From NCBI GenBank assembly GCA_964199315.1, contig OZ116708.1, forward strand, positions 13,640,001 through 13,704,000: a stretch of DNA of 64,000 nucleotides, read 5' to 3'. Under the pieces are notes generated by a model. That model saw only the letters and a program-made list of their open reading frames with translations. It made no database searches and was not told the DNA's origin. Numbering within the stretch: position 1 is the stretch's first letter; each line of letters opens with the position of its first letter. Shown here in pieces: positions 2,742 through 3,145 of the stretch. The position numbers were made by a program, and so were the translations under genes. This DNA comes from Orbicella franksi. Its lineage: Eukaryota.

Positions 2742-3145
2742 TTTGACCTCGCCTTTGACATGACATGACGTAGGATCAAAGTTGTACAAAGCCATGCCGC
2801 CTTTGAACGCCTTTGACATAAGAGATCAAAGGTATGCAAAGTCGTGGTGTCTTTGAACGCCTTTAACGCGCGTCAAAACTGTAGTCAAAGTTATTGACAT
2901 GTTTGACCTCGCCTTTGGCAGGGATCAAATGTATGGCAAATCCATAAGATATTTGATTCTCCCTTTTACGTGGGTCAAAGGTGGAGTCAAAGTTAAGATC
3001 ACATTTGCCCTCCTCTTTGTCATGGATCAAATGTATCGGCAAAGCCATGACATTTTTGACACACATTTGACGCGCGTCAAAGTTTGGATCAAAGCTATGA
3101 TCATATTTGACTTCGACTTTGATCAGGATCAAATTTAGAGTAAAT
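2742..3145. repeat. Array of 8 degenerate dyad units, TTTGA-N5-7-TTTGA-N6-TCAAA-N6-8-(T)CAAA, period 50-52 bp
   Basis: Units start at 2742, 2802, 2852, 2902, 2952, 3004, 3055 and 3106. The four 5-bp motifs are conserved while the spacers diverge. Confidence 0.85.

Follow-up and report, generated by a model that had tools for sequence, protein, structure and literature searches.

The dyad array upstream of KIN17 in a coral genome is probably the subterminal repeat region of a young non-autonomous CACTA/EnSpm-like transposon

Upstream of KIN17, the window (the whole stretch of 64,000 nucleotides of Orbicella franksi DNA analysed here) contains an array of eight dyad units at positions 2742-3145, and the question raised by this locus is whether the array serves KIN17 or belongs to something else. 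The original prediction, made from the letters alone, took it for a phased binding platform in a divergent promoter, with TCF/LEF-like half-sites, and considered as well that it might be the transposase-binding array of a TTAA MITE. The layout described there was fully reproduced. The units start at 2742, 2802, 2852, 2902, 2952, 3004, 3055 and 3106, corresponding to the predicted spacings of 60, 50, 50, 50, 52, 51 and 51 bp, and in each of them two TTTGA-like half-sites precede two TCAAA-like ones, with intervals of mostly 12, 11 and 12 bp. In total about 32 half-sites are present, with an extended 10-bp motif Y-R-N-M-TTTGA-Y. Exact TTTGA/TCAAA words occur 22 times in the 404-bp array, where ∼2.2 are expected (348 in the whole 64-kb window; Poisson estimate P ∼1e-14). 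Motifs are kept while spacers have diverged, as had been proposed: pairwise identity between units is 92% in half-site columns and 46% in spacer columns. The period of 50-52 bp stands as unit spacing and was refined to a true higher-order period of 102 bp. Tandem Repeats Finder returned a period of 102 bp (2.7 copies, 76% match) and a repeat search found 88-nt copies at 102-bp spacing; hence two types of ∼51-bp unit alternate in the array and form a higher-order repeat. Type-B units have a CGCGCG centre between the inverted half-sites. An Rfam search of window positions 1-4000 gave no match.

The surrounding sequence was used for a search of the same genome. A query covering 2700-3290 yielded 40 scored matches with 93-100% identity, all of them ending at 3163/3164, and in an alignment of 19 copy loci to the window the shared sequence runs left from 3163 as far as the loci extend. 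A pattern search for the termini (at most 2 mismatches in 24) detected 73 array-end and 70 other-end termini genome-wide, while reversed-pattern controls gave 0. The genome thus holds about 70 copies, bounded by 15-bp terminal inverted repeats; the best matches are 93-100% identical and are distributed across the 13 largest of the 15 numbered contigs that contain hits. In DNA data from two public runs the depth of the element was ∼30-100x that of single-copy flank, a sum of contig depths that does not represent a copy number and is in line with the count in the assembly. All eight units, without gaps, were found in each of the 23 young copies examined. In an older subfamily (∼89-95% identity) two copies carry one extra 50-bp unit. 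Since about 70 near-identical copies share the same array, it is most likely the element's own putative protein-docking region and not a control element of KIN17. We estimate a probability of roughly 80% that the array represents the subterminal repeats of a young, non-autonomous cut-and-paste transposon of the CACTA/EnSpm-like (CMC) type, inserted upstream of KIN17.

The complete transposon comprises 5,112 bp (G000:C11:13638052-13643163, corresponding to window positions -1948 to 3163). It was rebuilt from locus L036 and the window, and both termini were located by pattern search. The copy upstream of KIN17 is complete: positions 1-3163, up to which near-identical copies align, represent its part within the window, and 1,948 bp lie before the window start, reaching G000:C11:13638052. 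Three complete copies are colinear across ∼5.1 kb. The ends are formed by perfect 15-bp terminal inverted repeats, CACGGCACGAAAAAT...ATTTTTCGTGCCGTG, which open with CACGGCACG and are perfectly inverted in all nine complete copies. In the window the repeat occupies 3149-3163, where ATTTTTCGTGCCGTG on the + strand equals CACGGCACGAAAAAT read inward. The exact 15-mer occurs 129 times in the genome, nearly always at termini of the family, and an exact search with it found no partner in the genome having the same repeat and a different body. Immediately outside, at 3164-3166, lies the target-site duplication CGC, of which the second copy is located at L036:1050-1052, just beyond the other terminus. 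Eight of the nine complete copies have a perfect 3-bp duplication that cannot be extended to 4 bp, a length within the 2-4 bp of CMC elements. These duplications read GCG, AAG, AAT, AAA, ATT, ATT, TTA and TCA, the first being that of the window's own copy on the element strand (CGC on the window + strand). Triplets adjoining 98 distinct termini are AT-rich and lack a consensus. The TWA target of PIF/Harbinger and Chapaev3 is found in 10 of these 98 triplets, and TTA in one of the eight duplications. Among the complete copies, L026 (G000:C4:20069542-20074991) alone has no matching 3-bp duplication (GCT versus TGA); it is 5,450 bp long and contains an extra segment of ∼365 bp that is common to the older subfamily. 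Its mismatch could stem from recombination between copies or from an adjacent deletion.

CAC...GTG termini together with 3-bp duplications are a hallmark of EnSpm/CMC transposons (PMC12730594, PMC4079192). The terminus of the coral element reads CACGG and is not a literal CACTA pentanucleotide. The wider definition of CMC requires only CAC...GTG (PMC4079192, PMC12730594), and these trinucleotides are present within the terminal inverted repeats. The assignment to this superfamily is putative and is based on the structure of the ends and on one candidate match to Transposase_21. The element itself has no stop-free frame of more than 103 aa in its 5,112 bp, and a Pfam search with its four longest frames matched no family, indicating that it is non-autonomous.

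CMC elements are mobilised by a DDE transposase of the TnpD/Transposase_21 type, with C2C and H3-4H motifs. In the genome, 28 matches to Transposase_21 (PF02992) were found, several of them in open frames of 935-963 aa. Uninterrupted frames of this length are located at C10:3846112, C6:29610631, C15:13016762, C5:21790161 and C2:22148624 and form two groups of near-equal length; they may be intact CMC transposase genes and thereby candidate mobilisers of non-autonomous families. One PF02992 match, at C10:5734077, is located between two termini of the family, an other end at 5717825 and an array end at 5741910. This match in C10:5717825-5741910 is a possible lead to an autonomous partner, but may just as well represent an unrelated element nested in a region rich in transposons. 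The segment belongs to a 25,191-bp tandem triplication (G000:C10:5717825-5792292), with array-end termini at 5741910, 5767101 and 5792292, Transposase_21 matches at 5734077, 5759268 and 5784459, and the other-end terminus present only once (5717825). Ten of the 28 Transposase_21 matches are found on C10 between 3.1 and 6.0 Mb.

Academ and Zator are candidate superfamilies outside CMC that also make 3-bp duplications, and the array could in principle dock a transposase of such a kind. The CACGG terminus would be compatible with this, as would the fact that no transposase is linked to the family by sequence. We consider such an assignment unlikely. The Transposase_21 match between family termini on C10 speaks against it, and targets of the Harbinger and Chapaev3 type (TWA) are excluded by the duplications. 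Moreover, the combination of CAC...GTG termini, consensus-free 3-bp duplications and asymmetric subterminal repeats is the signature of CMC/EnSpm elements (PMC12730594, PMC4079192, PMC2613891).

Long distances between paired termini (∼8.8 and 15.8-17.7 kb) were considered as a sign of autonomous copies. This was rejected, as these loci consist of the 5.1-kb element and unrelated nested insertions. The insertions are located at differing positions and comprise BEL/Pao and Gypsy LTR elements, a Crypton-like tyrosine recombinase and unknowns. Six copies of 7.4-8.8 kb lie in one orientation within 1.25 Mb on one contig (G000:C14:15918125-17167411), which looks like a segmental duplication and not like independent insertions; one of them (L035) harbours the nested Crypton-like tyrosine-recombinase gene (DUF3504 and Phage_integrase). 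Family members were also detected outside the assembly. A scan of JGI metagenomes with the terminal 24-mer identified 87 coral-metagenome contigs with family termini, including diverged subfamilies down to ∼82-85% identity in which the array is retained. No transposase was found among these 87 contigs, all of which represent non-coding family members or diverged subfamilies.

The distribution of the half-site motif was analyzed with the element oriented array-end first. The density of TTTGA/TCAAA amounts to 51/kb at the array end (positions 1-430) and 32/kb in the last 343 bp, compared to 5/kb in the 4.3-kb interior. Flank preferences of the half-sites are alike at both ends and lead to the same extended motif, while the interior occurrences lack them. 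The element therefore has asymmetric subterminal regions of ∼425 and ∼340 bp, in which the motif occurs in both orientations; at the end opposite the array it is enriched and non-tandem. Comparison of 18 diverged relatives with the window's copy revealed an agreement of 0.960 in half-site columns and 0.903 in non-CpG spacer columns (Mann-Whitney p = 1e-4), and changes common to at least three sequences were found in 6 of 110 half-site columns and 42 of 259 spacer columns (Fisher p = 0.004); the sequences are mutually related and the alignment may favour motifs, so that these p-values are indicative only. Within the genome itself, a substitution test of half-sites against spacers was significant neither for young copies (odds ratio 0.58) nor for four older copies (odds ratio 0.80; p > 0.3 in both cases). 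This is expected if individual insertions decay neutrally.

These data bear on the possibility that the array is a neutral internal minisatellite, a product of tandem duplication in the family's ancestor that has no role in transposition. Indeed, the 102-bp period and the gain or loss of one 50-bp unit between subfamilies are typical of tandem-duplication dynamics, and the young copies reveal no significant sparing of half-sites. However, half-sites are far better conserved than spacers, both between units and across diverged subfamilies, and identity between units outside the half-sites amounts to only 41-58%, i.e. the units are not homogenised. A one-sided minisatellite would also fail to explain the enrichment of the extended motif, in non-tandem form, at the other end, and a locus-specific satellite or minisatellite does not fit with the same eight-unit array at about 70 dispersed sites inside a bounded element. 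A neutral minisatellite is in our view quite unlikely.

Still less support was obtained for an array that acts mainly by its DNA structure, where the transposon end would be flagged by cruciforms or hairpins as a target of cleavage, of replication-linked transposition or of silencing. The single strand of the array folds better than shuffled sequences (-66.6 versus -46.4 kcal/mol, z = -4.2), and the CGCGCG centres of the type-B units, flanked by inverted half-sites, could be read in the same direction. Within a unit, however, self-complementarity is limited to the 5-bp half-sites, the spacers having none, so that only short, broken stems could form. Extra folding energy of this kind is to be expected wherever direct and inverted repeats are mixed. 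Subterminal regions of CACTA elements have the same stem-loop potential, yet are known protein-binding sites (PMC2613891). We regard a mainly structural role as extremely improbable.

The docking of a protein at the transposon end remains the preferred reading, and it is modelled on well-studied plant elements. CACTA elements have asymmetric, reiterated subterminal motifs in direct and inverted orientation that are bound by TNPA and act as cis-determinants of transposition (PMC2613891). Excision of En/Spm also requires the transposase TnpD, and defective elements can move if the subterminal sites are kept (PMC2613891). From the published CMC signature and the binding of TNPA in En/Spm, we infer that the half-sites of the coral element are docking sites. 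By analogy with En/Spm and other CACTA elements, they would be recognized by a DNA-binding protein that the transposon family encodes and that is supplied in trans, either a TnpA-like protein or the DNA-binding domain of the transposase itself. Such a protein would bind the direct and inverted pairs of half-sites cooperatively; the array end offers two direct and two inverted half-sites per unit, about one helical turn apart. The bound protein might then bring both ends together, and a DDE transposase would cut at the CAC...GTG termini. At KIN17 the array would be a passenger, with transcripts starting downstream of the element.

The coral family resembles the CACTA elements En/Spm of maize, Tgm of soybean and Tam1 of Antirrhinum in several respects: CAC-initiated terminal inverted repeats of 13-15 bp and 3-bp duplications; asymmetric ends, in each of which several hundred bp are packed with direct and inverted copies of a short motif and have stem-loop potential; and non-autonomous deletion derivatives that retain the cis sites (PMC2613891). 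In contrast to these elements it resides in an animal host, a coral, and terminates in CACGG. Its motif Y-R-N-M-TTTGA-Y is unrelated to the 12-bp motif of En/Spm, one of its ends is organized as an unusually regular eight-unit 51/102-bp higher-order array of 2+2 dyads, and no TnpA-like or TnpD-like gene is tied to it. CMC elements of animals occur in cnidarian genomes. With animal CMC elements (Chapaev, Mirage, EnSpm-like) the coral family shares the invariable 5'-CAC...GTG-3' termini and duplications of 3-4 bp (PMC4079192). It differs from Chapaev3, which duplicates TWA between A and T (PMC4079192), by a duplication free of any consensus. Many copies of a short motif within the terminal few hundred bp are likewise known from other superfamilies. 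In Ac/Ds (hAT) elements, subterminal hexamer repeats are binding sites of transposase or accessory proteins and are needed in cis. For the MITEs Emigrant/Lemi1, transposase-binding subterminal motifs are described (PMC1636448). Ac/Ds and Emigrant/Lemi1 nevertheless differ from the coral family in superfamily, duplication length (8 bp or TA) and termini.

A bolder version of protein docking can be formulated, in which the docking region of this CMC-like family has become an ordered scaffold of eight four-site dyads. If true, the accessory protein would have to be tetrameric or form filaments, and the mode of end recognition would be one that is undescribed for animal cut-and-paste elements. As some of the units carry canonical TCF-type sites, Wnt-responsive elements could in addition arise from the ∼70 recent insertions beside host genes such as KIN17. 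We consider such a scaffold very unlikely.

The relation of the element to KIN17 was analyzed in RNA data. The identity of the gene was confirmed by the match of its joined exons 1-3 to PF25095 (C2H2-zf_KIN17, E = 7.5e-22). The first coding exon extends from 3454 to 3573 on the + strand, its ATG at 3454 being 290 bp away from the transposon terminus, and spliced reads connect 3571/3573 to 3677/3679 (GT..AG). Exon 2 (3679-3773, +) and exon 3 (5893 onward, +) are delimited by GT..AG introns, with splice joints 3571->3677 and 3771->5891 in two RNA runs. In a stranded run (X21) not a single read mapped to 1374-3287, and coverage of KIN17 begins in 3288-3461; transcription of KIN17 thus starts downstream of the element. 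A further run (X23) had 2-6x coverage over the element on both strands, with loose ends and mixed continuations at 3163, indicating that these reads originate from other copies. An upstream ATG (MSDDAKKLELG...) lies at 3332-3391, ∼120 bp before the KIN17 start, where the RNA coverage sets in, and would be a candidate uORF if transcription started further upstream.

The original prediction placed the array between two head-to-head start codons. An ATG at 2462 on the - strand does exist; it belongs to a short open frame of 96 aa (2371-2658, -) that is internal to the transposon, is present in all copies of the family and revealed neither a Pfam domain nor a splice junction in RNA reads. As this ATG is not the start of a neighbouring gene, the "divergent promoter" is an artefact produced by the insertion. 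The possibility was nevertheless weighed that the array has been co-opted as a platform at which TCF/LEF, or another dimeric or tetrameric factor, promotes or adjusts the expression of KIN17 or of a divergent pair of genes. The array is situated 300-700 bp upstream of the KIN17 ATG. As in Wnt-responsive TCF/LEF arrays, a minority of the half-sites match the core (A/T)(A/T)CAAAG, among them AGATCAAAGG at 2822-2831, and WWCAAAG occurs 7 times in the 404-bp array compared to 1.4/kb in the window. However, only 7 of the ∼32 half-sites fit WWCAAAG; in the conserved motif the base that follows TTTGA is C/T, where TCF needs A/T. In contrast to a TCF/LEF array, the repeats are part of a dispersed transposon with ∼70 copies; the array is missing from four more distant coral-type KIN17 loci, and the insertion junction was seen only in the probable source sample. 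Together with the silence of the element in the stranded run and the start of KIN17 RNA downstream of it, this makes a platform serving KIN17 or a divergent promoter highly improbable, and the claim of TCF/LEF half-sites does not hold for the array as a whole.

The conservation of the upstream region was investigated with relatives of KIN17 exon 1. Contigs of four more distant coral-type taxa (84-89% exon identity, 281-10,000 bp upstream) contain no terminal repeat, element or excess of half-sites upstream of KIN17. Upstream half-site density is 3-7/kb in these four taxa, compared to 23 in the kb that precedes the KIN17 ATG in the window. Their upstream DNA cannot be aligned to the window beyond 3309, and none of them provides a true empty site; the predicted sequence of the empty site reads ...GGTCAACGC-AAGACCGCAAG... 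The age of the insertion was further addressed in DNA runs. In at least 14 runs, which come from several studies, 82-93% of the words of the adjoining stretch 3100-4300 are present, while the words spanning the 3163|3164 junction (two words sampled) were found in only one run, the possible source sample. The insertion appears to be recent and possibly private to the sequenced individual, and the two sampled words are suggestive of an insertion polymorphism.

The transposon is inserted into an older palindromic, MITE-like repeat at 3164-3285, which was also seen at L036:∼830-1052 and is abutted by the proximal promoter of KIN17. This older repeat is rich in CGCAAG/CTTGCG and contains a hairpin (3201-3273) with 22-nt arms at 3201-3222 and 3252-3273 that are 91% complementary. 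A first look at the genome gave at least 302 candidates with 80-85% identity, many of them matching on both strands. The original prediction had paired a 12-mer at 2719 with an inverted copy at 3254-3265 as possible ends of a TTAA MITE. The pair exists, with 11 of 12 positions complementary, but is not a terminal inverted repeat: position 2719 is an internal site of the transposon in all copies, and 3254-3265 lies inside the separate older repeat. A TTAA-target MITE of the piggyBac type was rejected, as the shared sequence stops at 3163 and not at 3265, and the target-site duplication is 3 bp. The notion of a transposase-binding array thus survives insofar as the array represents the subterminal repeats of a mobile element, although one with 15-bp terminal inverted repeats, a 3-bp duplication and CAC...GTG ends. 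The TACATGTA palindromes in the introns of KIN17 were considered as copies of the 3164-3285 repeat, and this was rejected.

These results remove a false lead, as the apparent "phased binding platform" in a promoter is most probably the cis-acting end of a recently active transposon. They also document that a reef-building coral harbours a young CACTA-like family which may still be mobile, with defined ends and target-site duplication and a candidate protein-binding motif. Repeat annotation may benefit from the family, which could also supply markers of insertion polymorphism and a clean substrate for work on end recognition by animal CMC elements.

Two further repeats were noticed in the window. 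Nested in the transposon at ∼1570-1637 is a foldback of ∼68 bp (cagtggtcaaaat..gtggactcac / gtgagtccac..attttgaccactg). Its DNA contig depth is 5-17x that of the remaining element, and RNA loose ends occur at 1572 and 1639, which suggests a separate hairpin element of very high copy number. Intron 2 of KIN17 contains a repeated stretch at 3984-4331 with a DNA depth 10-50x that of single copy. In the stranded run, first mates map there to the strand opposite to that of the KIN17 reads; 90 reads skip from 4016 to 4260 without GT..AG, and many loose ends are found at 3988, 4260, 4289 and 4302. This stretch may be an expressed repeat or a small-RNA-like unit.
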